Below, piece after piece: positions 2,561 through 64,000 of a DNA stretch of 64,000 bases. The DNA lies in sequence record NC_070936.1; one strand, 5' to 3'. Positions within the stretch are counted from its first letter, which is position 1, and every line of letters begins with the position of its first letter. Position numbers and translations under genes: made by a program. Under the pieces are notes generated by a model. The model was not told the origin of the DNA, searched no databases, and worked only from the letters and a program-made list of their open reading frames with translations.

Positions 2561-3649
2561 TTAGTTCATGAATTCATCTGCTAATTGAGCAAGATACTTA
2601 CCTGCTTCTTCAGAGACTTCTTCTTTCGCTAATTTGATTGCGTCTTTCACAATCGCTTTGCTGGTTTTCTTCTCACCTATCTGCAATTGAGAATCAAGAG
2701 TAATAACTGCATCACGATATCTTGCAGCGATAGCTCCCAGTTCTTTATCTACAGCAACAGCACGAGAAAGACTACGACGTTTACCTTCGTCTACAGTATC
2801 TTTGTTAGCTTCGTTCAGCTTATCCAAAGCAACGGTAGCTGAAGCAAGAATAGATTGCATGTCGCCAGCTGCATCGATTAGATCACGTGTAGCCATAGTC
2901 AGATTACTAACTTTGGTGCCAGTGAAGTCAGCTTCCAGTCTATCCACCTTGGCTGCCTTTTCGATAGCTTCAATGCTGGTGTTCAGAGAGGTCAGTGTTT
3001 CACCATTAGGATCGATACGTTTGATCTCTTTAATATGACCCGCTACGCCAGCTAATTGACGTTTAACGGTTCCAGAGATACGTTCTATCGTTTCACTCTG
3101 AATCTCTTCATGACGGGCTTCTGCTTCGTCAGTAAGAGCCACTTCCTTGATCTTCTGATTGATAATCATCTTGTCAGAACTAGACAGGCGTCTGATAATA
3201 CGAATTATCTCGTGGTTACTACCATCGGTAGCTAAACCATCAATGCCTTTGGTCGCTAGTTGTTTAACTTGTCTGTTAACGACATCCCCTTCAAGAGATT
3301 TTTTAGCTTTAGTGAATTGTCTAGCTGTATCACCATTAATCCAATCTCTGATGGCACGCAGTAAGTTCTTGATCCACTCATAAACTTTCTGACCACCTTT
3401 CTTAACGTTATCAAGGAAACTTTCCTGACCTTCTACTTCGACCAAGTCAATACCATGAAGTTTAAGTACGGTATCTGCATAGACAGCGTCGCCGCTCAAT
3501 TCATTATCACCAACACTTTCTTTAGCCAATTCAGCCAGGCCATTGGTGATGGCGCAAGTGTGTTCAAACTCTGATTCCAGAGATTCAAAACCAGTAATGT
3601 GTTTCAGTTCCATTTTCATTTTACCATTGGAAAGGGGCCGTAGCCCCAT
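2561..3649 (-). CDS. Internal head (inner-body/ejection) paralog-family protein; start probably 3613 or 3619
   Basis: GQES-FLDNVKK...WIKNLLRAIRDW motif typical of phiKZ-like head paralogs; GxE|S protease-type sites. Confidence 0.65.
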   Translation of the reverse strand: MGLRPLSNGKMKMELKHITGFESLESEFEHTCAITNGLAELAKESVGDNELSGDAVYADTVLKLHGIDLVEVEGQESFLDNVKKGGQKVYEWIKNLLRAIRDWINGDTARQFTKAKKSLEGDVVNRQVKQLATKGIDGLATDGSNHEIIRIIRRLSSSDKMIINQKIKEVALTDEAEARHEEIQSETIERISGTVKRQLAGVAGHIKEIKRIDPNGETLTSLNTSIEAIEKAAKVDRLEADFTGTKVSNLTMATRDLIDAAGDMQSILASATVALDKLNEANKDTVDEGKRRSLSRAVAVDKELGAIAARYRDAVITLDSQLQIGEKKTSKAIVKDAIKLAKEEVSEEAGKYLAQLADEFMN

Positions 3650-3652
3650 TAA

Positions 3653-5752
3653 TTAAAAGATATCACTCAGAGAATAATTCTTGAATGAGACATGATGATC
3701 AAAGTGTTCAGAATCTAAGTTATAACCTTCCATCCCGACCATATTCATCAAGTTCATTTTACCAGCAACAGCTTTGGTGTTAGCTCCACCCGCCATCGTT
3801 AGCTTACCACCACCAAGGAGAATTTCAACTTGTTCCTTAGACCATTCCATAATGTCAATAGAACGAGAGGTGATGTTTTCTTCAGATCCAGTATCAAGAT
3901 CAATAAGGTAAACGAAACATTCGGCATCCTGACCTTTACGATAAATACGAGCAATGGTCTGTTTCAACTCATAAGAGCGGAATGGGGAGTTCATCAGAAT
4001 CAACTGGTTACACATCAATAAAGGGTAACCTTCACGGAGTGTGTTGAAAGTAGTAATTAGCGGGTTGACATTTGGATCATTCTCAACCTGTTTAATTACC
4101 TTCTCAATATCACCAGAGTTCTCGCCATGTACAGAAATGGAATCGATACCTTCAGATTCGAAGTAAGTCTCAAGTTCTTTGATAACTTCTATATAGGAAG
4201 TATAAATCGCAGTTTTCTTTTGAACAGACTGAATCATCTCTGGAAGTTTGGCATGTCGTATAATGTCCCTGACAGCCTCCATACGGGCTCTTGATAAAAC
4301 ACGCCCTAATGCCTCACCACGAATCTTAAGTCCCACATACTTGACTGCAGACTTAATATGACGGAAGTATTTGAGGTCATCTCCCTTGAGTTCTTTTTCG
4401 ATATCCTTTTCAACTGAATGAGCAAATTTAGATTTGTCAGAATCAGTAAAGTTGTTGTACCCATGTTTCTGGAAGTAGTTCACAATCTCAATGTACTTAT
4501 CAAGACGGGCTTCTTCTTTAGCATCACCTTCTATCCAAGTGCGATACTGTTCAACAAACTTTTCCCAGTCGGAAATATATCGAGGCATGTGTTCATTATA
4601 GAACATAACACGATCTTCGATAAAGTCCATCATCACTGCTCTGATATTATTCAGAGTGTATTTCTCAGCTCCTGGGAATTTAACAGGTACAACTTCAGGT
4701 TCAGGTGGTTCGTCCATCCCCTCGACTTTAGTAATCGTAAATTTAATTCTACCCAAACGGTGAGCCAGCATCTGACTCAAGAATTCATTATCACGACCAT
4801 ACATCTTCAAGAAGTCAGTCTGAACATCCTTATCAAAGAACTTATCGATAACAGTGAAGAGAGCAAAGGTTTCACGGCCTTGAGCTTTGATAGGTGTACC
4901 TGACATGAACAATACGTCTGAAACAAACTTATTAGAGCAGAGATCAATTAACCCCTGAGTTTGTTGTGACTTATATTCATTATAGTTGTGTGATTCGTCG
5001 ACGATGACTTTGATGGGCTCTTTACCTTGCTTAGAGATAACGGAGATTAAACCATCGAATTCTCTACTACGGAGATTTTCTTTATAGATAATAAAGTAAT
5101 CGGCGTCTGCATGGTTAAGCGGATCGGTCCCATCTAAAGAAGTCCAGATCTTTGGAGTTTCTTTAAAATACTTAGTTGTCATCTCATTAACCCAAGGGGT
5201 CTGAACTAAGTGTTTTGGAACTACAATAATAGTTTTATAGGGAGAGATCATCTTGGACCAAACTAGGCTAGTGTATGTTTTACCACTACCTGGTTCAGCA
5301 TCAAGTAAACAACCCCGTAACTGATACCCATATTTTATACGAGAGTATCCTTCGAGAAACTCTTGTTGATCTGGGAAAGGTTTGAGTTTAAAACTTTTGA
5401 GTGCTTTATTAACATCGTAAGGCGGATAATCCTGGAATGTAGTTTCAATCCAGGTCTTGGCTTTGATCTCGTTATAGAGTTGATTGTATTTAAACATCCC
5501 AACCCGATAACGGTCTACCTGACGCTTGTTACGATTAGTTGTAAAGTGGTCAAGAATCCATGCCAACTCCACCATAAAGAACTGGTGTATTTTGAAACGT
5601 CGGTTATTCAGTTTAGTGATCATTCGGCTAGCAATTACAGATGTACCGAAGTTAGACTTAAGGTCCAACTCAAATGCATTTATATTAATACCGTTGATAA
5701 CATAGTAGGAACCGACCTTTTCCACAGATGGCGAAAAGTTAAAGAATTCCAT
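3653..5752 (-). CDS. SNF2-like superfamily 2 helicase/ATPase
   Basis: Motif I LLDAEPGSGKT, motif II IVDESH, motif III SGTP, motif VI QTIARIYRKGQ. Confidence 0.92.
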   Translation of the reverse strand: MEFFNFSPSVEKVGSYYVINGININAFELDLKSNFGTSVIASRMITKLNNRRFKIHQFFMVELAWILDHFTTNRNKRQVDRYRVGMFKYNQLYNEIKAKTWIETTFQDYPPYDVNKALKSFKLKPFPDQQEFLEGYSRIKYGYQLRGCLLDAEPGSGKTYTSLVWSKMISPYKTIIVVPKHLVQTPWVNEMTTKYFKETPKIWTSLDGTDPLNHADADYFIIYKENLRSREFDGLISVISKQGKEPIKVIVDESHNYNEYKSQQTQGLIDLCSNKFVSDVLFMSGTPIKAQGRETFALFTVIDKFFDKDVQTDFLKMYGRDNEFLSQMLAHRLGRIKFTITKVEGMDEPPEPEVVPVKFPGAEKYTLNNIRAVMMDFIEDRVMFYNEHMPRYISDWEKFVEQYRTWIEGDAKEEARLDKYIEIVNYFQKHGYNNFTDSDKSKFAHSVEKDIEKELKGDDLKYFRHIKSAVKYVGLKIRGEALGRVLSRARMEAVRDIIRHAKLPEMIQSVQKKTAIYTSYIEVIKELETYFESEGIDSISVHGENSGDIEKVIKQVENDPNVNPLITTFNTLREGYPLLMCNQLILMNSPFRSYELKQTIARIYRKGQDAECFVYLIDLDTGSEENITSRSIDIMEWSKEQVEILLGGGKLTMAGGANTKAVAGKMNLMNMVGMEGYNLDSEHFDHHVSFKNYSLSDIF

Positions 5753-13274: not shown

Positions 13275-14390
13275 ATGTCAACTTTAGTTCAAAGAGCAAG
13301 TTTGTTTGAAGGGGTAGACCTAAATAACAAACTACAAGAAGCTAGCCGTTCAATGACAGAAACGGTATCTGGTTTAACTAACCAATTAGTCAATCCATTT
13401 AAAGTAGTCACTGAAGCTACTGAATCCGGTGTTGCGTTAATTAGTGAGAAACAGTCGCAGATTGCTTCTAATATTAGTGCTTATAAATCTCAGGCTCTAA
13501 CCGGCATCAACAATGCTATCAAAGGTCTTACCGGTGGATTGTTAAATATCGGTGACATCGGTAGTATCGTTACCTATCAAGATGGGTTTAAAGTTAATAC
13601 TGATGAGTTACTACGTTTAGGTAGTAAAGGTCTTGGCTTTAACATCAACTCCATGCGTGATTTGAAACAGCAAATCGGTAATGGGTTTATTGATGAACTT
13701 GATAAAATGACCGGTGGGTTGGCTTCTGGTTTATTTTACGCTGATGGAACCAAGTTACACATTGCTGATGGTTGGGAAATGAATATGGGGATGTCTCTCA
13801 TTGACTTCCTCGGAAAAGACGACCCTGATGGATTTGGGACCATTGTTAACGTAGCAGCCATGAATAGCATCCTTAATACGATGCTTGATAAAACCATTGG
13901 GTATGGAATGTGGCAAGGTTATGGTAATTACGGAAACATGTATCTGTTCCAATCCGATTACCATGACCAACTTATCGATTCATTAGGTTTGGCAATCGGG
14001 CGTGGTGATTGTAAATCTATTCAAGTCATCTTTGATATCATCAAACAAGAAGGTATCAATAAAGTTAAAGCTAAGTATCCTGAATTGATTGAACAGATGC
14101 TTTCTAACTTTACATTTAGCTCTGACGAAGATGCTAGTAATTATCAAGAGATCAAAGTCCTGTTACTTCAAGTTATCGAAACTGTAGGCGGTAAAGACTG
14201 GTACCAGTATCCGACTTCATTTGGTCCAGCAACCAACTTAGCTTTAGTTAACTTTATTTCTGATGACGCCAAACTTCTATTAGGTGAAGAAACTAATTTG
14301 GTTCCTTTATTATGTTCATCCGGAATCTTCATTGATCAATCAGCTCCTGATGTCTTCATGCAAGATTTCCCTAAAGCAGTTAAATTCTAA
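13275..14390 (+). CDS. Probable virion structural protein
   Basis: 371-aa ORF beside the tail-tip/tape-measure genes; no motif recognised. Confidence 0.6.
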   Translation: MSTLVQRASLFEGVDLNNKLQEASRSMTETVSGLTNQLVNPFKVVTEATESGVALISEKQSQIASNISAYKSQALTGINNAIKGLTGGLLNIGDIGSIVTYQDGFKVNTDELLRLGSKGLGFNINSMRDLKQQIGNGFIDELDKMTGGLASGLFYADGTKLHIADGWEMNMGMSLIDFLGKDDPDGFGTIVNVAAMNSILNTMLDKTIGYGMWQGYGNYGNMYLFQSDYHDQLIDSLGLAIGRGDCKSIQVIFDIIKQEGINKVKAKYPELIEQMLSNFTFSSDEDASNYQEIKVLLLQVIETVGGKDWYQYPTSFGPATNLALVNFISDDAKLLLGEETNLVPLLCSSGIFIDQSAPDVFMQDFPKAVKF

Positions 14391-55457: not shown

Positions 55458-56084
55458 TTATGCCAATTTAGCTTGTGCTTCTTTGATTAACCCAATAACT
55501 TCTTCAACAGGTGTAGCGGGTTTAATGGTAACGACAACAATGCGTCGATCCCCACCAGAGATAAGCTCAATTGCATCGAGATATTTCTGACGTTGGGTTG
55601 CAAAGTTAGTCGGATTCTGAAGCCAGATTTCTTTATTGTCTAGAACACGTGAACCATTGTTACAACGTTCCATGTAGGTTTCATAGTCAAGATCAATAAA
55701 GACCAGGATATCTGGAATAGCAGAATAGCCATAACTGTTGAGGATGGTTTCGTTCATTTTCAGAACGGTTGCTTGATCAGCTTCTTCCGAAGATTGGTAT
55801 ACCATTGAACTGACCACACAGCGATCAGAGATGATATCCCGACCTCTCGAAAGATAAGGGTGCTTGACTTTCTGGTTTGCTTCAACACGCTGAGCAATCA
55901 AAGCCATGATCTCATAAACCTTAGGTGCGTGGTTCTGAGTGATCATTTCTTTAACTTGTTTGGAGTGAAGTGTTTCTGTGAACGGTTCTCCAACATGACG
56001 TGCTTTAAATGCATATGCGAGTTGTTTAGCGAGTGTAGATTTACCAGAGAGATCGAGGCCCTCTAAAGCTATATCAAAAGACAT
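55458..56084 (-). CDS. tmk: Thymidylate (dTMP) kinase
   Basis: IALEGLDLSGKST P-loop, EPF, SDRCVVSSMVYQ, PDILVFID. Confidence 0.92.
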   Translation of the reverse strand: MSFDIALEGLDLSGKSTLAKQLAYAFKARHVGEPFTETLHSKQVKEMITQNHAPKVYEIMALIAQRVEANQKVKHPYLSRGRDIISDRCVVSSMVYQSSEEADQATVLKMNETILNSYGYSAIPDILVFIDLDYETYMERCNNGSRVLDNKEIWLQNPTNFATQRQKYLDAIELISGGDRRIVVVTIKPATPVEEVIGLIKEAQAKLA

Positions 56085-57550
56085 TACCGGTATTGCTCCA
56101 TAGTTAAAGTTCTTAGTACGATATACAACATCAAAGAGGTTCTGAGTGAAGTGATCTTGATATCAGTTTTGATACCTGTCATGGCTTTCACCAACTCATC
56201 ACCATTTTTTCTCAGTTTAAATAACAGGGCATTCGTAGACTTACTTGAAGTATACGCACCACGAATCTTAAAGAACACATTCTTAAGATCATTATGGCGA
56301 ATAGAGTTAGTCGCTAAATACTCAAATAAGTGAGTGGTGACATCGTCAACAAACTCACGATATTGTTCCCCTTTAGGATGAGAGTATTGAGATGGGAAAT
56401 CACGAATGATCATTTCCAACTTATCTTCATCGGTGCGTGGGATTGCTTTAGCTGCATAAGTTGCAAGTTCCTGTTTAAAGAAACTGTTCTTATCCACCAA
56501 CACAGTTCCGATATAGTTCTTATACCGGTTAACTTGTTTCTGAACATCTTTAATGTTCAGTTCGCCATCTAGTACAGCAAGACCTGAGTCTGTTTCTACT
56601 AGATCAACTGAGTCTTTGATTTCGTACAGAACCTTAGTGTAGTCATTGATAACACCTTTAAGGCGTGATTCCATATCGTTGACCATATACACTATTTTCT
56701 TATCATTATCCATCTTAGCAAAGGCATCAAAGTGAATACCTGTACGAGGATCGATAACGAACTCACCACGAGCACGGAAGAGATCAGTCCATGAACCATA
56801 GCGCTTAATATCAAACTTCAAGGAGAGCTTGTTATAGGCTGTTACAGCAACACTCGGTTTCACCAGATAACCGAAGTAGTGGTTCATGATCGATGTCATA
56901 ATGCGGTAGTGGAACAACATTACTAAATTGATCAAAGTGTCTTCTTTCAGATTACGAGGTAAACTTGAATTATAGACACGGTTCATCAGATAAACAATAG
57001 ACAGGTTAAAAGGTTCAGAAGAAACTTTAAAGTCTTTGTTAATCCATTTGGTTTTAATTAGTTCGTCACGTAACCTTACTTCATCAACATCGATGATATC
57101 ACGGAAGAAGGTAACACGGTCTGACGTTTTGAACAAGATACGGTGAGTGCCTAAATAAGGTGACCCAAAGAACTCTGTATGATCATTGTCTTTGGTAGCA
57201 AAACCATAAACAAATCTTTTCAGTGTTCTTGCCCAACGTTCATTAATAACCAGATCATCTACCAAGCCATCAAAGATATCTTTAACAGCATCATCACGAT
57301 TATAGTTAAAGTTAGGTTGTAGTGCTTCAAATCCAGCCATGTATTCTGGATTATTCAGATAGGACTCAAGCCCACCAAACTGATTTAGAGCTACTTCAGG
57401 ACCAAACAAGGTGAATGGTTGGTCTCGTTGTTCTAAACCCGCTAGTAGCTCTCTCAGCTCGTTATCTGATAGTGAATGTTCCATCATGTCTTCTTCTGAC
57501 TGAGGAACGTAACTTTGCCTTACCGCATAGGCTGTATTAGAGAGATTCAT
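56084..57550 (-). CDS. Conserved phiKZ-family protein, probably head-associated
   Basis: 488 aa; N-terminal AGLE, GGLE and AGFE protease-type sites; FFGSPYLG and LSLKFDIKRYGSW segments. Confidence 0.65.
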   Translation of the reverse strand: MNLSNTAYAVRQSYVPQSEEDMMEHSLSDNELRELLAGLEQRDQPFTLFGPEVALNQFGGLESYLNNPEYMAGFEALQPNFNYNRDDAVKDIFDGLVDDLVINERWARTLKRFVYGFATKDNDHTEFFGSPYLGTHRILFKTSDRVTFFRDIIDVDEVRLRDELIKTKWINKDFKVSSEPFNLSIVYLMNRVYNSSLPRNLKEDTLINLVMLFHYRIMTSIMNHYFGYLVKPSVAVTAYNKLSLKFDIKRYGSWTDLFRARGEFVIDPRTGIHFDAFAKMDNDKKIVYMVNDMESRLKGVINDYTKVLYEIKDSVDLVETDSGLAVLDGELNIKDVQKQVNRYKNYIGTVLVDKNSFFKQELATYAAKAIPRTDEDKLEMIIRDFPSQYSHPKGEQYREFVDDVTTHLFEYLATNSIRHNDLKNVFFKIRGAYTSSKSTNALLFKLRKNGDELVKAMTGIKTDIKITSLRTSLMLYIVLRTLTMEQYR

Positions 57551-58395
57551 TAACGTTTCCTTGGAACTGTCATCTTAATAGCATCAGACTTACCTTTCGG
57601 ATCAGCGTATGCGAGATATTTCTTAATCTCATTATTATAGAGATCTTTGAACTCTCTGTGTGCGTCTGCATAACCCTGGATGTCATCTTGAACATCCTCA
57701 ACAGTAACACCGAAACGAGATACTGCTTCTTGCATACCACGACGACAAGTTTTGTAGATATAAGCCTTTACACCTAACTCAACGAGTTCAGCAAACTTAT
57801 CATACATTCTTGGTGGGATTACAGAGAAGTGTTCATCATAGGACAAGATGACTTTAGCAATCATGTTAAACATAGCCGAACCAGCATCACGGATAATAAA
57901 TGAGTTATTACCTGTCATAGTGAAACTGGTGAAAGAACGTTGCACCTGTCCATCATCTAAACCATTAATTAAACGGTTAAGGCTGTTGTTCATCATACCA
58001 GAACCGCAAGCAGCATAGTTATTAAAGTTATAACCATTATTGATAGCTCTGTTGATGTTACCTGGATAAACTTCGAGTACAGATAGGATACGACGACCCC
58101 CTGTCATAAAGTCAGGTACGTTTACAGCTATGATACCGCCTGAAAGGTTTTCAATATGAGCCGCACTAAGATCAATGATCTCTGTTGTCCCACCTGCTAC
58201 GTTTAACAGGGGACCGACCATCTTCATGATAACCTTTTCACGGATACCTTGCTCAACAGTAAACTCGTCATTCACTGGAGACCAAATGCTACCATAACCG
58301 TTGTTTGGGTTATGAAACGCTAGTTTCAATAAATATTCAGATATGTCAGTAGGTCCATTAATAACGTACTCTACTGAAAAGTCAACTGGATTCAC
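57550..58395 (-). CDS. Conserved phiKZ-family protein
   Basis: 281 aa, GTG start with RBS GAGG; TAATG coupling to the next gene. Confidence 0.75.
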   Translation of the reverse strand: MNPVDFSVEYVINGPTDISEYLLKLAFHNPNNGYGSIWSPVNDEFTVEQGIREKVIMKMVGPLLNVAGGTTEIIDLSAAHIENLSGGIIAVNVPDFMTGGRRILSVLEVYPGNINRAINNGYNFNNYAACGSGMMNNSLNRLINGLDDGQVQRSFTSFTMTGNNSFIIRDAGSAMFNMIAKVILSYDEHFSVIPPRMYDKFAELVELGVKAYIYKTCRRGMQEAVSRFGVTVEDVQDDIQGYADAHREFKDLYNNEIKKYLAYADPKGKSDAIKMTVPRKR

Positions 58396-58515
58396 GTTTG
58401 AACCCTCCTAATCACTATTTCGAAATAGACCTTTATAAAAGGCATTGATCTCACTATTCAACCATCCTAGGTTCATAATAGAGAGAAGACGTCATATGAT
58501 TTAAAACTAAACAAA

Positions 58516-58560
58516 CATAAACCCCTACCCCTTCCTTTCGGAGGGAGTAGGGATTAAATG
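58516..58560 (-). terminator. Hairpin terminator family copy 5, closing the minus-strand RNA locus
   Basis: CCCTACCCCTTCC-TTTC-GGAGGGAGTAGGG. Confidence 0.75.
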
Positions 58561-59500
58561 CTTGGCTACATGGACACTCGAAAGGATAATCAATAATGTC
58601 AGGGTTGCAAATCCCGTCTCATTACAATTACCCAGACGGCTGTCTACGGTTGATGTCAACAACTTCCCCTTGGCATAGGGGCGGACCGTTTGCACTTGGC
58701 TTGGTACGCTATAATGCCATATAGTTACCTTCCAATTTCAGCGCTGTTGTCTCACCCTTGAACATCGGGTGGTCGCTCACGGTTAGGGCACGACTGTTCT
58801 ATGACGGTTCCACCAGTGCTGGAGACACTTAAATGGATACCCGTTTCGTCTAATTATTTATTGTCGCCAGACTCGTCAGATAGTACGACATACCCTCACC
58901 AAAGGGATTAGGTTGGTCCTCTGATATCGCATGAGTAACTATGTTACTCTCATAGGCTCTTTGAACATCAATGTTCAACCTTAAGTTATGCTTTCGTTCA
59001 GAAGGACCGATGGGATGTGTTCCCGCATCATCAACTCTCAAGCTCATCACAGTTTCTGCATATATAGCTAGGGTTTGTTCGACGCCAGAACACAAAGGGG
59101 TACAGCGTTCCCAACTTTTGATAGATATTGTTTTTTATGACCGCCCAGGATGGAGTTCGGGTTCTACCATCATCGATAACCCAATAGTCACGTATCGGGA
59201 GTGCATTCAGCTTATGCTACTGGACATTCTATCAAACGCGCTGCTATGTCGCCGAGGTTTACCAGGGCAACACCCACCAGAGGCTACTTACTATAGCGGA
59301 CTACCGCCGCCGTTCACACTCTGGGTTTTTAACTCGGCCTACATTGCCGAGTACTGCCTCCGTAATTTGTCTGCCCAGTGGGGCCGAACTCTACGGAGGT
59401 CTTACATCCCAATACCGTTGACTGGCAAACCCCTTCCAACCCCGGATCAACCGGCTCATTGGACCAGACTTACACTTCCCAACTTAACTGGGTTACTACA
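58561..59500 (-). ncRNA. Large structured ncRNA block 1 (~940 nt), class unassigned
   Basis: No credible ORF. Nested helices such as 58915-24/58998-59008, 59277-82/59319-24 and 59357-64/59392-99. Bounded by a tRNA CCA and a terminator; contains a hammerhead. Confidence 0.75.
58796..58890 (-). ncRNA. Type I hammerhead ribozyme, predicted GUC cleavage between 58803 and 58802
   Basis: CTAT-CTGACGA-GTCT[17 nt]AGAC-GAA-ACGG[33 nt]CCGT-C-ATAG: full catalytic core plus stems I, II and III; loop-II GCGACA is complementary to the 5' flank TGTCGT. Confidence 0.88.
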
Positions 59501-59577
59501 TGGTGGCCCTGACAGGACTTGAACCTGTGACCAGGCGATTATGAGTCACTTGCTCTAACCAGCTGAGCTACAGGACC
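59501..59577 (-). tRNA. tRNA with CAU anticodon (Ile2-like, or elongator Met)
   Basis: GGTCCTGTAGCTCAGCTGGTTAGAGCAAGTGACTCATAATCGCCTGGTCACAGGTTCAAGTCCTGTCAGGGCCACCA; encoded CCA. Confidence 0.95.
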
Positions 59578-59585
59578 ATTGCTTG

Positions 59586-59825
59586 TTATGCTTCTACTGC
59601 TTTCAGATGACGGTCAAGATCTTCGTAACCACCAACATACTGATCGTCAACTACGATCTGCGGAACAGTACGAACTGGACGACCGACGATTTCACCCAAT
59701 TTGGCGCCATCAATACCAGCTTCTACGATATTGATATATTCAACTTCAGCACCTTTGGAATCAGCCAGTGCTTTGGCGCGATCACACCAAGGGCAATTCG
59801 GTTTGCCGTAGATTACAACTTTCAT
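59586..59825 (-). CDS. grx: Glutaredoxin
   Basis: CPWC active site, RTVPQI, VGGYEDL. Confidence 0.95.
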   Translation of the reverse strand: MKVVIYGKPNCPWCDRAKALADSKGAEVEYINIVEAGIDGAKLGEIVGRPVRTVPQIVVDDQYVGGYEDLDRHLKAVEA

Positions 59826-59977
59826 TTATTTTCCTAACTGATTGTAATATGAATAAAACTGAATATCCAAATGAGGAATTCAATAACTCCCCATCCGATA
59901 ACCCCACAGATGAGACCAGCTACTATCAAGGCCCCTGTCCAGGGCCCACTAGAATAAAACATGTGTATCCCTTAAAG

Positions 59978-60054
59978 TGGTCCGCTCTGCTGGGCTCGAA
60001 CCAGCGACCGATTGCTTAGAAGGCAATTGCTCTATCCTACTGAGCTAAGAGCGG
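59978..60054 (-). tRNA. tRNA-Arg(UCU)
   Basis: Canonical cloverleaf, anticodon loop CT-TCT-AA, encoded CCA. Confidence 0.96.
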
Positions 60055-60060
60055 TGAATA

Positions 60061-60148
60061 GCTATCGGGAGTAAGATTCGAACCTACATAGTCTTACGGA
60101 CGTATCCGCCTTCGAATTCCCTCACTAAGTTTAAATAGACTATCCCGA
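60061..60148 (-). ncRNA. tRNA-like RNA A (acceptor and T-arm, no proper anticodon arm)
   Basis: TCGGGA/TCCCGA stem, GTAGG-TTCGAAT-CTTAC T-arm, TAGTCT/AGACTA helix, CGGA-TACG-TCCG hairpin; no CCA. Confidence 0.6.
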
Positions 60149-60166
60149 AAAGTGGCACTTATGATA

Positions 60167-60271
60167 GGTCTCGAGGTCAGGACTCTAACCTGACTACTGC
60201 GATGATGTCCAGTGGTAGAAACTAATCATCCACCATCACATCACTGCGATGTCTTCAACGACATCCTCGAA
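60167..60271 (-). ncRNA. tRNA-like RNA B with elongated central arm
   Basis: TTCGAGG/CCTCGAG acceptor then ACC; TGTC-GTTGAA-GACA D-like arm; ~50-nt central arm; TCAGG-TTAGAGT-CCTGA T-arm. Confidence 0.6.
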
Positions 60272-60374
60272 GTTGGAATTACACACCGAGTAACCGATAG
60301 GTGGGAAGTGGATCCCAGGTATGCGTTTTAGGCCCTGGCCTGTTGTACCCCGGTTGCACTCAGCATGTAATAGT

Positions 60375-60448
60375 TGGCTGGGGTAGTTGGGATTGAACCA
60401 ACGTCCAGGGATTAACAGTCCCCCGCTAAACCACTCAGCTATACCCCA
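60375..60448 (-). tRNA. tRNA-Asn(GUU)
   Basis: TGGGGTATAGCTGAGTGGTTTAGCGGGGGACTGTTAATCCCTGGACGTTGGTTCAATCCCAACTACCCCAGCCA; starts at the base after the HNH stop codon. Confidence 0.93.
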
Positions 60449-60916
60449 TTAAACTTTTGGCTCTATTCCTTGTTTAATACAGTTGTTGCGATATCCATCC
60501 AAATCGAATATCCCATCAACCATATTCTTCATTAGGGTTTTCATCCCCAATCCAGTTCCCTTTGCTGCCTTTCTTGCAGAAGAATAAACTACATTACCCA
60601 CGGTCCAACCATTTGGTCTAGACATCTTAACATGATTGCTCCTATGAACCTTTTCGGAATCTTTCCAATTATCCTTATGGGTTCCTATGGCAATATGTAA
60701 AGGAGAACAACATAATCTATTCCCGCACAAGTGCCTGACAACTGTATTTGGTTTTAGAGTTCCATAAATGTGGGTTGCTACTAATCGATGTGTCGTCCAG
60801 TGTTCACCATCAATAGTTATTTGACCATAACCTTCCCTAGTGCTTTTGGTCCAATTCCAGCAGCCGGTATCGGAATCAAATTTTACATTAGTAAAAACCA
60901 ATTTAACTTTTGACAT
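60449..60916 (-). CDS. Free-standing HNH homing endonuclease (155 aa; start reassigned from 61054)
   Basis: GCWNWT..GYGQI..HRLV...VRHLCGNRLCCSPLHI..GTHKDN (HNH_3 pattern); C-terminal YSSARKAAK helix-turn-helix-like DNA-binding segment. Confidence 0.9.
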   Translation of the reverse strand: MSKVKLVFTNVKFDSDTGCWNWTKSTREGYGQITIDGEHWTTHRLVATHIYGTLKPNTVVRHLCGNRLCCSPLHIAIGTHKDNWKDSEKVHRSNHVKMSRPNGWTVGNVVYSSARKAAKGTGLGMKTLMKNMVDGIFDLDGYRNNCIKQGIEPKV

Positions 60917-60951
60917 ATTAATTCCCGTTCTACCGACTGAACTACATGAGC
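60911..60951 (-). pseudogene. 5' remnant of an enterobacterial-type tRNA-Asn
   Basis: GCTCATGTAGTTCAGTCGGTAGAACGGGAATTAATATGTCA: intact D-arm GTTC-AGTCGGTA-GAAC; collapsed anticodon arm; the ATGTCA variable-loop sequence supplies the HNH start codon. Confidence 0.75.
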
Positions 60952-61615
60952 TTGGGCGGGAGTCACTAGCTCCCAGGTCAGACAATGTCCAACTGTAACT
61001 CGGTTTGATTACCTCACGGCAACCCTGCTCTGGCATCACATGGGTCTCACCCATTATCCCCCAGACTTGGCCTACGATGGCTCCTTTGGCGCACCCAACC
61101 CGAAACGCTCGCTCAAAGACTTATCGTAATAAAGCTTTAAGCAAGAGTTTAACCCACTTGACATCTAAGTCAGCACTGATTCTTACTTGCAATTCAACAA
61201 TCAGTTTCGGTTTACCTGACACCTTGGTCAATGTATCACCCGGTTTGTATCTATCACTTTTGGAAGGGCAGTGGGTTATTTGGTTTTGTCTGCGATAGCT
61301 TGGACCCTGCTCATCTGGATCTCTTCTCCGTGAGGACTGAAAGCACTATTCAAGACTAACGCTTAGTATAACGAAGTATATCTAAGATTCCGAACTTAAT
61401 CGGTAGTTGTTGAGTATCGTAGAGGGACTCGTTTCCAAATTGTGGTCCTACCATTATACAACACTAGTTAGGCTGGAACATGTAATCGCTAGTGAAGTTC
61501 CTATTCGCTGCAACGCGGGCCTAGGAAGGGAATTGGCGAACCGGCTGATCGAGGCGAATGACCATGGCTTAATCATTTCTTTTAGTGTCAACCAGTTCTT
61601 GTTCTTAACAGAGTA
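60952..61615 (-). ncRNA. Large structured ncRNA block 2 (~660 nt), class unassigned
   Basis: No credible ORF. Helices 61151-58/61270-77, 61176-81/61199-204, 61362-61386, 61462-67/61489-94; GNRA-capped hairpin 61008-61023 on the minus strand. Confidence 0.65.
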
Positions 61616-61627
61616 TAGTAAGTTCTG

Positions 61628-61849
61628 TTAATTAAATAATTTTGGTGGTGATATGATATTGGGGCGAGGTCTATAAGTCATCATGCACTTATCTATTCCT
61701 TCCTCTCCCTTTTCATTCCATATCTTAATGATTTCCTTTTCATCCAAGTACTTGCTTAAGAACTTGATCTTCCTTAGAACCCTGTCTGTCCATAGATTGG
61801 ATTTGTTCTTAGCACCCCACCACGATCTGAAGCTAATCTTCACACTCAT
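61628..61849 (-). CDS. Small basic hypothetical protein (73 aa)
   Basis: Start overlaps the end of the Tad2-like gene; phage-like composition. Confidence 0.55.
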   Translation of the reverse strand: MSVKISFRSWWGAKNKSNLWTDRVLRKIKFLSKYLDEKEIIKIWNEKGEEGIDKCMMTYRPRPNIISPPKLFN

Positions 61850-62072
61850 CCCACAGCTTCCAGTCTTCTGCTAAGAGATCAGATACTGAAGGAACCCAGG
61901 TATTGGTGATGAGTCTAACACTATCAACAATAATGAAGAAAGGTTTGATCCCAGGCACATTGTGAATACTCACGTAAAGACCTTTACCGTTCCAACCATT
62001 ACGTTGGTATTTCTTCCCTTCCTTTAGTCCTTCCAGAACTTCTGAGAAAGTAAGTAATTTAACTTTAGTCAT
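61833..62072 (-). CDS. tad2: Tad2/DUF2829-like anti-defence (signal sponge) protein, 79 aa; start reassigned from 62183
   Basis: TFSEVLEGLKEGKKYQRNGWNGKG and WVPSVSDLLAEDW are the DUF2829 signature motifs; RBS AAAGGA 6 nt upstream. Confidence 0.8.
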   Translation of the reverse strand: MTKVKLLTFSEVLEGLKEGKKYQRNGWNGKGLYVSIHNVPGIKPFFIIVDSVRLITNTWVPSVSDLLAEDWKLWDECED

Positions 62073-62085
62073 ATTCATTCCTTTA

Positions 62086-62797
62086 GGAAAAAGGCCCCAC
62101 ACCAAATACAAGGGCATGGGGCAAAGGGAAGTCCAATGGAACACATTAACCATTGGACCAAGCAGTAACCAGCTGGCGGTCACGCTTTTAATGTGGACTT
62201 GTTAGATCACATTAAAAGTGCCAGAGATTCATTTCTCTGGCTGCTCAAAATAAGCTTAAAGCGTTTGATTTTGGAGAAGTTGAGGCGTCAACTTCCATAT
62301 GTGTATTTCAGAAAACAAACATATGGAAGTAGGGTCTTTCGACCCTTCCAACCTCACTGAAGACTTCCTTGCCTTCCCTAGGAATACTATTTCTAATACT
62401 CTTAGGGAAAGCAAATGCATACCAGGAAAAGTAGTATGCACTCACCTTCTTACCTATTGTGAAGATATCAAAGCCGCGGAGCACGATCCCTTCTTTATAT
62501 TCACTCTTTCTAATTGAATGAATTATAAAGAAAGGGGGAAGGGCAGACTTCCCACCTTTGGTACAGGAGTGATGAACAATGGCCACAAAAACCCGGCAAT
62601 GAGCATTAGTGGTAGAAGCACGATGGCAGTTCGTGATTCTTTAAATGGACTTATTCTAATTAAGATCACTTAAAGAATCAGAGATATTAATCGTGACATA
62701 ATATCTCTGGCCTGTGTATTTAATCACAGCAAACGTGTTATGAGCAATGCAACTTGAACAACAAAAAGAGAAGTGGAAGAAGTTCACTTTTTGTTAC
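62086..62797 (-). ncRNA. Large structured ncRNA or leader, block 3 (~710 nt), class unassigned
   Basis: Almost continuous long helices (62131-39/62150-58, 62185-95/62208-18, 62291-302/62319-30, 62635-44/62670-79, 62679-88/62700-09); GAAA tetraloop on the minus strand (62331-46); ends in GCCCCA/TGGGGC-CTTTTT. Confidence 0.7.
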
Positions 62798-62822
62798 ATA
62801 ATATAAATAAGTTCCATTATTA

Positions 62823-62845
62823 AATAAATAGATATTATTAGATTG
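62823..62845 (+). promoter_or_regulatory. Early-type phage promoter motif (partial)
   Basis: AATA-AATAG-ATATTATT-AGAT-TG. Confidence 0.5.
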
Positions 62846-62892
62846 AATATACGTTGATATTAATTCTAACTTTAAGTATAGAGGAACTTATT

Positions 62893-63507
62893 ATGCATAT
62901 CCCAGAAACTGAACTCACTCGTCTGCGTAAAATCATCATCAACACCCTGACTGAGAAGTTTCATGTGAATCAAGTGACCGTAGAACAGGTCGACACTTCT
63001 AAGTTATATGAAGGTCATATTTGGGAGTCTGAAGTTTACGCTTTTGAGTTTATCATTAACGGTACTGATCGTTATATTACTTTTTGTACTCTGCGTTATG
63101 GGCGGACAATGTTTACCAGAGCTAAGCAGGGCATCTGTCCATCACTAGCTAAATTAATTAGACCGCATGACTTTGGGCTAATGGCTACTGGCGATTATTT
63201 AAATCGTAATGATGTGATAGGTAAGTTCATCGAGTGTCAGATAAACTTGAAAGCCCATCAACACCTACAGAGTTATTTTGCAGGTCATGCTGCCATTACC
63301 AATAAAGAATACGATGTCGCCATCGGCTACGACATTACTCGTCGACACAAAACCACAATGACCTTTGACTGTATTTTTGAAATCCTAGTCAAAGAGAAGA
63401 ATACCATTGACTTCACCAAGTATTCTGGAATGATGATCAATGGCTCCCTCACCATGTTGAATGATGTCAATGGTAAGAGTGTTAATATCAGGGACATCTT
63501 CATCTAA
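62893..63507 (+). CDS. Hypothetical protein (204 aa; start reassigned from 62854)
   Basis: ATG at 62893 behind RBS GAGGA. Confidence 0.8.
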   Translation: MHIPETELTRLRKIIINTLTEKFHVNQVTVEQVDTSKLYEGHIWESEVYAFEFIINGTDRYITFCTLRYGRTMFTRAKQGICPSLAKLIRPHDFGLMATGDYLNRNDVIGKFIECQINLKAHQHLQSYFAGHAAITNKEYDVAIGYDITRRHKTTMTFDCIFEILVKEKNTIDFTKYSGMMINGSLTMLNDVNGKSVNIRDIFI

Positions 63508-63521
63508 CAAAAAGGTAAGGT

Positions 63522-63878
63522 ATGAATATATACACTACCATCTTACTTGTCCTATCAATAGGACCGATTAGCGCTCTCCTGATTCGATACCTGTGGGTTC
63601 GATATGAGAGAAAACTAAACAACAACATGAGCAGCGATCATATTGATTGCGATTTCAACAAACAGAAGGAATATCCTATGGCCCGTAAAACGCCTAAACA
63701 AGCTAAGAAAGTTAAAATGAACGAACAGTCTATCAGTCGTCGCGAGATGATTCACTTGGACTATCTTAATGTCTATAACGAAGTGTTGAAGCATGAAGAA
63801 GTGCTCGACCTTGATATTGACATCATCCTGGAAGCTACTAAGACTGTGTTCAGTAATGAGCGTCCTTGTCTAAACTAG
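63522..63878 (+). CDS. Hypothetical membrane-anchored protein, with possible internal start at 63678
   Basis: N-terminal TM helix; RBS AAGG; second in-frame ATG behind AAGGA. Confidence 0.65.
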   Translation: MNIYTTILLVLSIGPISALLIRYLWVRYERKLNNNMSSDHIDCDFNKQKEYPMARKTPKQAKKVKMNEQSISRREMIHLDYLNVYNEVLKHEEVLDLDIDIILEATKTVFSNERPCLN

Positions 63879-64000
63879 CATCATCTCCAACTCCGGAAGA
63901 GCTGGAAGCCCTGGTTGAGAAAGTTCTCGTACACCTGGACGGTTTGAAACTCATTTCCAAAGAAGTCCATAGTTTGCTTCAAAAATAATCAACACCATAA

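Follow-up and report, generated by a model that had tools for sequence, protein, structure and literature searches.

Homing endonucleases encoded within phage tRNA clusters are known from few cases, namely SegB of T4 and the F-Tfl enzymes of T5. SegB is a free-standing homing endonuclease whose gene lies in the T4 tRNA cluster and is absent from close relatives; it cuts preferentially inside the tRNA-Asn gene of T2L, its homing replaces ∼1250 bp of T2L tRNA genes, and its expression was proposed by the authors to be dampened through processing of the tRNA transcript (PMC2330249). The F-Tfl endonucleases are encoded in the tRNA gene region of T5 (2004, cited in PMC2330249), and intronless homing is known for SegF, SegG, and MobE of T4 (cited in PMC2330249, PMC2790892). 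The locus described here lies in a stretch of 64,000 nucleotides (nt) from sequence record NC_070936.1 (the window), which belongs, at 100% identity, to Klebsiella phage N1M2, a 253-kb jumbo phage. On its minus strand, the gene gp256 encodes an HNH endonuclease, preceded by the first 27 nt of a host-like tRNA-Asn gene (A-type) and followed immediately by a complete and divergent tRNA-Asn gene (B-type). Comparison with related phages indicates that gp256 probably encodes a free-standing HNH homing endonuclease that was inserted in the host-type tRNA-Asn gene of the phage at position 26/27 and is tied to a replacement tRNA-Asn. Neither the HNH gene nor the tRNA remnant is mentioned in the N1M2 genome paper (PMC7058600).

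Like SegB, the N1M2 HNH gene is located in a phage tRNA cluster, is patchy among relatives, and has tRNA-Asn as its presumed target. The nuclease domain of the N1M2 protein comprises HNH_3 and a His-Me zinc loop only and is not of the GIY-YIG type, unlike that of SegB. SegB is situated between two intact tRNA genes, recognizes the T-psi-C arm, and has no linked replacement isoacceptor, whereas the N1M2 gene sits inside a truncated tRNA gene, has its junction at the boundary of the D arm and the anticodon arm, and is accompanied by the B-type tRNA-Asn. By analogy, the N1M2 enzyme apparently works like SegB but outside its family. The F-Tfl enzymes, which we take to be of the HNH type, resemble the N1M2 enzyme in being encoded in a phage tRNA gene region, and they are not known to split a tRNA gene or to carry a replacement tRNA. 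In the SegF, SegG, and MobE systems, the nuclease gene is found beside a cleavage-resistant allele of its target, and a break in the sensitive allele co-converts the nuclease gene together with its flanks, as proposed for N1M2; the targets of those enzymes are protein-coding genes, whereas in N1M2 a tRNA gene would be targeted, with a different tRNA-Asn lineage as the resistant allele. Integrase-driven islands and prophages also insert in tRNA genes and preserve tRNA function by means of element-borne DNA, as in N1M2, but there an integrase and the att duplication rebuild the 3' end of the interrupted tRNA itself, whereas the N1M2 locus has a whole different tRNA gene and no integrase.

The split tRNA-Asn gene and its empty site

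On the minus strand, positions 60951-60925 read GCTCATG TA GTTC AGTCGGTA GAAC GG, followed by GAATTAAT and then by ATG TCA (with the ATG at 60916-60914). A first-pass annotation, made from the sequence alone, had quoted the minus strand from 60951 to 60911 and compared it with E. coli tRNA-Asn. The quoted string matches exactly, the E. coli sequence used for the comparison agrees with a real copy, the 22-nt stretch TGTAGTTCAGTCGGTAGAACGG is identical in both, and TTAAT and ATGTCA occur in the E. coli gene in the order claimed. The 22-nt match is not a chance event, because the 27 nt of the remnant terminate a collinear homology of >1.3 kb with Serratia phage Yubaba, which stops 27 nt inside an intact tRNA-Asn gene. 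This homology runs from window position 62260 to 60925, ends within the Yubaba tRNA-Asn (L002:3746-3821), and restarts at window position 60084 within the 3' part of the Yubaba tRNA-Ser, with blastn breakpoints pairing window 60925 with L002 3772 and window 60084 with L002 3993. Serratia phage Sureiya has the same arrangement as Yubaba, and Pseudomonas phage OBP (L098) and Kosakonia phage Kc263 (L144) contain an intact A-type tRNA-Asn at the syntenic place. The expectation of the first-pass annotation that HNH-free relatives would have one intact host-type tRNA-Asn here is therefore confirmed in four phages, and its proposal that the HNH gene lies within a former host-type tRNA-Asn gene is supported because these relatives keep the gene intact at the same site. 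Between N1M2 and Yubaba/Sureiya, the HNH gene is present or absent at one locus with flanks that are 85-99% identical, and the empty site holds the intact tRNA-Asn.

The A-type tRNA-Asn is ∼91% identical to E. coli tRNA-Asn, with positions 6-50 identical, and is presumably equally close to the tRNA-Asn gene of the Klebsiella host. Its acceptor stem differs by phage lineage, with compensation in each. By its homology to these genes, the N1M2 remnant is what is left of a host-like tRNA-Asn gene that worked in an ancestor. The remnant itself is not called as a tRNA by ARAGORN or Rfam; its cloverleaf is incomplete and comprises positions 1-27 only. Three intact tRNAs (Asn, Arg, and Met) are called near the locus by both programs, and the Rfam scan, which covered positions 56000-64000 at E ≤ 1, returned these three tRNAs only, with no intron and no other family around the HNH gene. 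The 220 nt of Yubaba that are replaced in N1M2 (Table 1) span the last 49 nt of tRNA-Asn, a spacer, and the first two-thirds of tRNA-Ser. The N1M2-specific segment contains, in order, an 8-nt junction, the 155-codon HNH open reading frame (ORF), the B-type tRNA-Asn, and ∼290 nt partly shared with Edwardsiella phage pEt-SU, in which the matching stretch is located downstream of tRNA-Tyr.

Table 1. Features of the N1M2 locus, with positions in the window
Feature	Position	Strand	Basis or remark
HNH (His-Me finger, Pfam HNH_3) endonuclease gene, 155 amino acids + stop	60449..60916	-	HNH_3 match, homologue alignment, proposed start ATG 60916
A-type tRNA-Asn 5' remnant (acceptor 5' strand, D arm, G26, G27; positions 1-27)	60925..60951	-	27/27 vs Yubaba
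Intact divergent B-type tRNA-Asn(GTT), encoded CCA	60375..60448	-	ARAGORN; Rfam tRNA 64.3 bits
Whole N1M2-specific segment, 840 nt	60085..60924	-	blastn breakpoints; stands for 220 nt of Yubaba
Junction and ribosome-binding region: purine run CGGGAA (first G residues = tRNA G26/G27) and AT-rich spacer TTAAT	60917..60927	-	function inferred
In-frame upstream extension, 138 nt, 46 codons, judged non-coding	60917..61054	-	RefSeq start 61036; longest ORF start 61054
Degenerate class-II tRNA-like remnant	60062..60148	-	T arm and 3' end = where homology with Yubaba tRNA-Ser resumes
Conserved structured RNA-like element, ∼94 nt, downstream of B-type tRNA	60278..60371	-	homology, fold z-score -3.7

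The B-type tRNA-Asn, which the first-pass annotation had not noticed, begins on the base right after the HNH stop codon (TAA). It folds as a cloverleaf with a GTT anticodon, G73, and an encoded CCA (the last two read from the sequence), and it changes the biology of the locus because N1M2 still carries a tRNA-Asn gene. At blastn sensitivity, the B-type tRNA-Asn was not found in the HNH-free relatives. Exact-match searches with its 5' half returned the contig of one further HNH-carrying relative (L018) alone in IMG/VR and no match in JGI metagenome contigs or in one genome per GTDB species. Between N1M2 and L018, acceptor pair 7:66 and T-stem pairs of the B-type tRNA are changed on both sides (compensatory changes). 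The homology between N1M2 and pEt-SU also starts inside the T arm of two different tRNAs, the B-type tRNA-Asn in N1M2 (window 60375-60403, minus strand) and tRNA-Tyr in pEt-SU (L004:3978-4006), a hint that conserved tRNA arms may act as crossover points in these phages.

Orthologous loci show the same junction. Protein searches found P0001 (155 amino acids, 71% identical) and P0002 (157 amino acids, 60% identical, in at least 24 contigs), both encoded at the syntenic locus of metagenomic relatives (L010 and L011, respectively), between Tad2-like and glutaredoxin genes; L018, from IMG/VR, is a further HNH-carrying relative, and a protein-guided metagenome scan found no HNH orthologue closer than the L011 type. 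An A-type remnant precedes the HNH gene in all four HNH-carrying genomes, with its end at tRNA position 25-27. In L018, as in N1M2, the stop codon of the HNH gene is directly adjoined by the B-type tRNA-Asn. In L010, the stop codon is followed by a chimera, in which a B-type 5' half extends to the anticodon loop and continues as an A-type 3' half including the variable loop, and ARAGORN calls no tRNA-Asn in it. The acceptor 3' strand of the A-type half is complementary to the upstream remnant at 7/7 positions and not to the B-type 5' strand, and the remnant and the downstream A-type half of L010 are therefore taken to derive from one gene. No tRNA at all is present at the HNH locus of L011.

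The location of the HNH ORF between the two halves of a tRNA gene in L010, and the interruption of a tRNA gene by a nuclease ORF in general, recall the self-splicing group I introns of bacterial tRNA genes, in which an endonuclease ORF can be borne by the intron. Such an origin of the N1M2 locus is scarcely credible. No Rfam intron family is found at E ≤ 1, and the junction is at position 26/27 instead of the anticodon loop. The ORF is flanked by 8 nt before it and 0 nt after it, therefore leaving no room for a ribozyme, and is followed by the 5' half of a different tRNA, with the A-type 3' half missing in N1M2. The N1M2 gene is accordingly found in neither an intron nor an intein, and, unlike the interrupted genes of group I introns, its tRNA is not restored by splicing.

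Translation start and the HNH protein

The first-pass annotation had further placed the start of translation at 60916 instead of 61054, which holds, and had derived the start codon from the tRNA, which is not supported. The homologues are 150-157 amino acids long and align with the N1M2 protein from residue 1, except that one member is extended at its C-terminus. In-frame stop codons are located 48 nt upstream of the start in L011 and 42 nt upstream in L018 with no alternative start in either, and the L010 frame contains one TTG only before a stop at -102. The upstream extension of the N1M2 frame has no Pfam match and no homologue, is absent from all orthologues, and overlaps both the remnant and a stretch devoid of ORFs whose conservation extends to HNH-free Yubaba. 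The length and alignment of the homologues, the orthologue stops, and the non-coding character of the extension together place the start at 60916, and the RefSeq start of gp256 at 61036 is probably wrong. That the longer product is real (195 amino acids from 61036, or 201 amino acids from 61054), with the tRNA remnant being translated, is highly improbable: the N1M2 frame is indeed open for 138 nt upstream and RefSeq annotates 61036, but the extension matches sequence conserved in Yubaba and no known protein or domain, the orthologues stop 42-102 nt upstream without a usable start, and the family keeps to its short length save for the one C-terminal extension.

According to the first-pass annotation, the anticodon arm has collapsed and the ATGTCA of the tRNA has become Met-Ser of the endonuclease, a model under which the ORF would have been fused to the tRNA at the variable loop and two small deletions would later have collapsed the arm. 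In a post hoc alignment test (p about 0.002-0.006), the 20 nt after GAACGG do outscore 99.4-99.8% of control 20-mers taken from the window when matched to the rest of the A-type tRNA, and the L010 gene also starts with RTGTCA. The orthologues, however, share the junction and diverge after it, with GGGAATTAAT ATG TCA in N1M2, GGAAATAAA GTG TCA in L010, and AGGTATCT(G/A) ATG GAT in L011 and L018, that is, a Shine-Dalgarno sequence followed by GTG TCA in L010 and by ATG GAT in L011 and L018. TTAAT is not kept in L010, and L011 and L018, which have the junction at position 26, continue with unrelated sequence whose alignment scores are low (4.0 vs 9.5). Family members that are not located in a tRNA-Asn gene have their first Met at the same alignment position, and one of them likewise starts with Met-Ser. 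TCA ranks among the most frequent second codons of the window, and the start of an unrelated N1M2 gene at 13275 has nearly the same context (GGATTAAT-T-ATGTCA). The fusion would require two deletions and, in two clades independently, a collapse to one and the same junction, and it is very unlikely. The survival of the variable loop downstream of HNH in L010 was also considered as decisive against it and was dropped, as the 3' half could be a later crossover.

TTAAT and ATGTCA are therefore, to judge from these comparisons, ordinary start-site sequence in N1M2, and the bases after the junction are best read as a Shine-Dalgarno sequence with an AT-rich spacer. GG is present at -9/-8 from the start, exactly at the junction of tRNA and insert, in all four HNH-carrying loci. 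The contribution of the tRNA to the start region is likely limited to G26/G27 (one or two G) of the purine run, and the start codon is most likely the HNH gene's own and not recycled from the tRNA.

The protein matches PF13392 (HNH_3) with 38.1 bits against a cut-off of 24.8 at residues 42-83, and several PHROG "HNH endonuclease" families, with a best E of 8e-24. The predicted catalytic His and Asn and the Cys/His metal ligands (H62, C64, C69, C70, H74, and N83) are invariant across 10 family members. A weak profile alignment to I-PpoI places H62 and N83 at the conserved His and Asn of its motif, which we take to be the catalytic residues of I-PpoI. A structure model built from a 4-sequence alignment has a predicted local distance difference test (pLDDT) score of 68, and in a Foldseek search of the model against the PDB, I-PpoI and I-HmuI came top with weak matches and the C-terminal domain of the family matched no solved structure. 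These two solved His-Me finger homing endonucleases, also the top matches at the sequence level, have the same layout of His, Cys-rich zinc loop, and Asn as the N1M2 enzyme, at marginal similarity (E about 0.01-0.1), and are intron-encoded, unlike the latter.

Full-length relatives that share the C-terminal domain (38-48% identity) are encoded in or beside tRNA clusters at 19/25 loci, often 15-35 nt after a tRNA, compared with one of the 36 loci of HNH_3 proteins that match the N-terminal nuclease domain alone. The tRNAs flanking the distant full-length relatives are intact, and the splitting of a tRNA gene is, on this comparison, peculiar to the N1M2 group. In a clade of metagenomic phages of ∼180 kb (L102:2386-2478 and 2960-3000; also L101, L103, L104, L107, and L110), a related HNH gene is located after a tRNA-Arg(TCT) of 93 nt in total, whose variable arm is unusually long. 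Past the HNH gene there is a short stretch resembling the 3' acceptor end plus CCA of the same tRNA-Arg, and a nuclease may have split or duplicated a tRNA gene here too, in mirror image.

Mobility, history, and proposed mechanism

The presence and absence of the HNH gene alternate among close relatives. A tree of DUF7484, a flanking protein, joins HNH-carrying N1M2 to the HNH-free phages Yubaba and Sureiya at 100/100 support, and HNH-carrying L011 to HNH-free Kc263 at 96/96. Between L011 (3967-4473) and the L018 contig (L099), a block of 507 nt that extends exactly from the remnant to the HNH stop codon is 91% identical, compared with 70.6% in the left flank and adjoining DNA that cannot be aligned. 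In this pair, the HNH gene is a discrete block with a sequence history unlike that of its flanks. Inside the block, identity drops along the HNH gene, from ∼97% over its first two-thirds to about 75-85% over its 3' third, a pattern suggestive of a crossover within the gene or of a C-terminal domain (presumably the DNA-binding one) that evolves faster. The ratio of nonsynonymous to synonymous substitution rates (dN/dS) between the L011 and L018 HNH genes is 0.08, and the gene is, by this measure, under purifying selection. The HNH genes of N1M2 and L010 are 70% identical at the nucleotide level with saturated synonymous sites (proportion of synonymous differences, pS, 0.85), compared with 84% for the flanks and 87% for the DUF7484 protein at the amino acid level, and the remnant is still identical at 24/27 positions. 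N1M2, L011, and L018 agree throughout remnant positions 8-26 (17/19 in L010), and positions 1-7 vary, which is, in alignment, the pattern seen among working tRNAs. The simplest reading of these data is repeated invasion of working A-type genes, in which the conserved tRNA body would have served as a homology arm; the remnant may also have a role in cis.

A single ancient and vertically inherited insertion would give some of the same patterns. The nuclease would then be domesticated or immobile, the HNH-free genomes would have regained an intact tRNA by recombination, and the D-arm remnant would have been kept for a role in cis, as an mRNA 5' hairpin, a processing signal, or a nuclease operator. 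The divergence of L010 and L011 from N1M2 is roughly parallel in the HNH protein (71/60%), DUF7484 (87/75%), and glutaredoxin (61/54%), and remnant positions 8-26 have stayed identical in N1M2, L011, and L018 although the synonymous sites of HNH are saturated between N1M2 and L010. Such an origin is nevertheless unlikely. All positions of the N1M2 remnant (27/27), also those of the lineage-specific acceptor strand, agree with the functional tRNA of the sister phage Yubaba, and the L010 remnant fits its own downstream 3' strand, so that both look like recent captures. The block shared by L011 and L018 within 70% flanks represents recent movement, and the HNH-carrying and HNH-free phages interleave on the tree.

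Under repeated invasion, the enzyme would cut the intact A-type tRNA-Asn of nuclease-free relatives near position 26/27, and repair of the break from a nuclease-carrying genome would copy the nuclease gene, with the conserved tRNA as the left homology arm. The right crossover would fall wherever homology next occurs, which could be the 13-nt identity of the two tRNA types at the anticodon loop in L010 and a site further downstream in N1M2. The B-type tRNA would escape cutting because its D arm differs. The HNH gene would be transcribed with the tRNA cluster, and processing of the B-type tRNA by RNase P would end the mRNA at the HNH stop codon, a mechanism similar to the dampening proposed for SegB. 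Expression within a tRNA operon, as put forward in the first-pass annotation, is plausible from the layout, given the zero-base spacing to the next tRNA and the absence of a terminator-like site between the two. The counts of sigma-70 promoters and terminators did not exceed those of shuffled sequence. The N1M2 genome paper places the phage near OBP and the phiKZ-type phages, whose transcription relies on RNA polymerases of their own (PMC7058600), and the scan therefore says little about transcription.

Several points weigh against the homing interpretation. Cleavage, the target site, and homing are all inferred from sequence. Recent transfer is seen for L011 and L018 only, because the HNH genes of N1M2 and L010 are more diverged than their flanks, and the tree represents one marker of 281 amino acids that adjoins the recombining region. 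The replacement tRNA is not always kept, because L011 has the HNH gene without a tRNA-Asn and L010 has a broken chimera. Three of the four HNH-carrying loci (L010, L011, and L018) come from metagenomic assemblies, L010 being a single contig, and the structure model is mediocre with weak matches to I-PpoI and I-HmuI.

A more elaborate "cut and replace" pair has also been considered, in which the nuclease would cut the tRNA-Asn genes of rival phages together with several host chromosomal asn tRNA genes, and the B-type tRNA, divergent in its D arm, would escape and decode Asn. The remnant would then be a homology arm and perhaps an operator of the nuclease, and the HNH clade with this C-terminal domain would be specialized on the tRNA genes of large phages. 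We hold this version to be distinctly doubtful.

Neighbouring elements and significance

The ∼94-nt element downstream of the B-type tRNA is common to N1M2, pEt-SU (L004:4007-4105), L011 (∼4510-4612), Erwinia phage AH04, and Serratia phage Moabite (the last two at L145:∼1575-1680 and L146:∼1690-1795), always in the tRNA region; its closing stem is long and its core almost invariant. Among five sequences, three pairs show two-sided changes and many show one-sided compatible changes, and no Rfam family matches the element. It probably travels with this region, is not needed for the interpretation of the HNH gene, and may be a stable small RNA like the species I/II RNAs of T4. The degenerate class-II tRNA-like remnant has a 6-bp acceptor, a good T arm, and a long variable region but goes without a call by either ARAGORN or Rfam. 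Homology to the tRNA-Ser of Yubaba, OBP, Kc263, and L018 covers its 3' part, so that a working tRNA-Ser(GCT) was seemingly lost from N1M2 at the right breakpoint.

Between the Tad2-like gene and the tRNA-Asn remnant, ∼870 nt (window 60952-61830, minus strand) contain no credible ORFs and are 87% identical to Yubaba/Sureiya, with parts common to OBP, Kc263, L010, and L011. A hairpin with the loop UUAUUA(C/U/A)GAUA and covarying stems recurs in this stretch, at ∼61110-61145 in N1M2, at ∼3565-3600 and ∼3780-3815 in L011, and in OBP, Kc263, and L010. The 199 nt adjoining the remnant have a fold z-score of -2.1, no Rfam match is found in the stretch, and it is a candidate for a large non-coding RNA or a set of processed RNAs. 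The hairpin-loop motif TTATTACGATA was tried as a phage promoter and rejected, as its 15 matches in the window (two exact) represent no enrichment over the 8.2 ± 2.8 expected. A second ORF-poor stretch of ∼1.1 kb (window 58400-59500), located downstream of tRNA-Met, is partly conserved (61-81%) in pEt-SU, OBP, L010, and L011.

Some existing annotations of this region are also affected. The RefSeq coding sequence gp252 (window 59010-59522, plus strand) overlaps with the oppositely oriented tRNA-Met and is apparently spurious. The gene gp255 (window 61833-62072, minus strand; 79 amino acids) is annotated as "methionine--tRNA ligase", which looks wrong because its orthologues carry PF11195 (Tad2-like/DUF2829); by this similarity, gp255 may be a homologue of anti-Thoeris-type sponges. 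In the N1M2 genome paper, the argument on codon usage treats the anticodons CAT, TCT, and GTT of the three tRNAs as codons (His, Ser, and Val), and the tRNAs are Met, Arg, and Asn (PMC7058600, Table 1 and Discussion).

The present analysis corrects the RefSeq gene model of N1M2 gp256, and it illustrates that claims of exapted start codons first need a comparison of orthologues. To the known homing endonucleases of phage tRNA clusters, the locus adds a nuclease of another fold that apparently does the same job as SegB, a tRNA gene physically split by a nuclease gene with a divergent replacement tRNA linked to it, and a clade of related enzymes encoded nearly always in the tRNA clusters of large phages. 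It also provides a predicted pair of enzyme and target, in which the A-type tRNA-Asn would be sensitive and the B-type resistant, and offers an explanation for mosaic phage tRNA regions with breakpoints inside tRNA genes.

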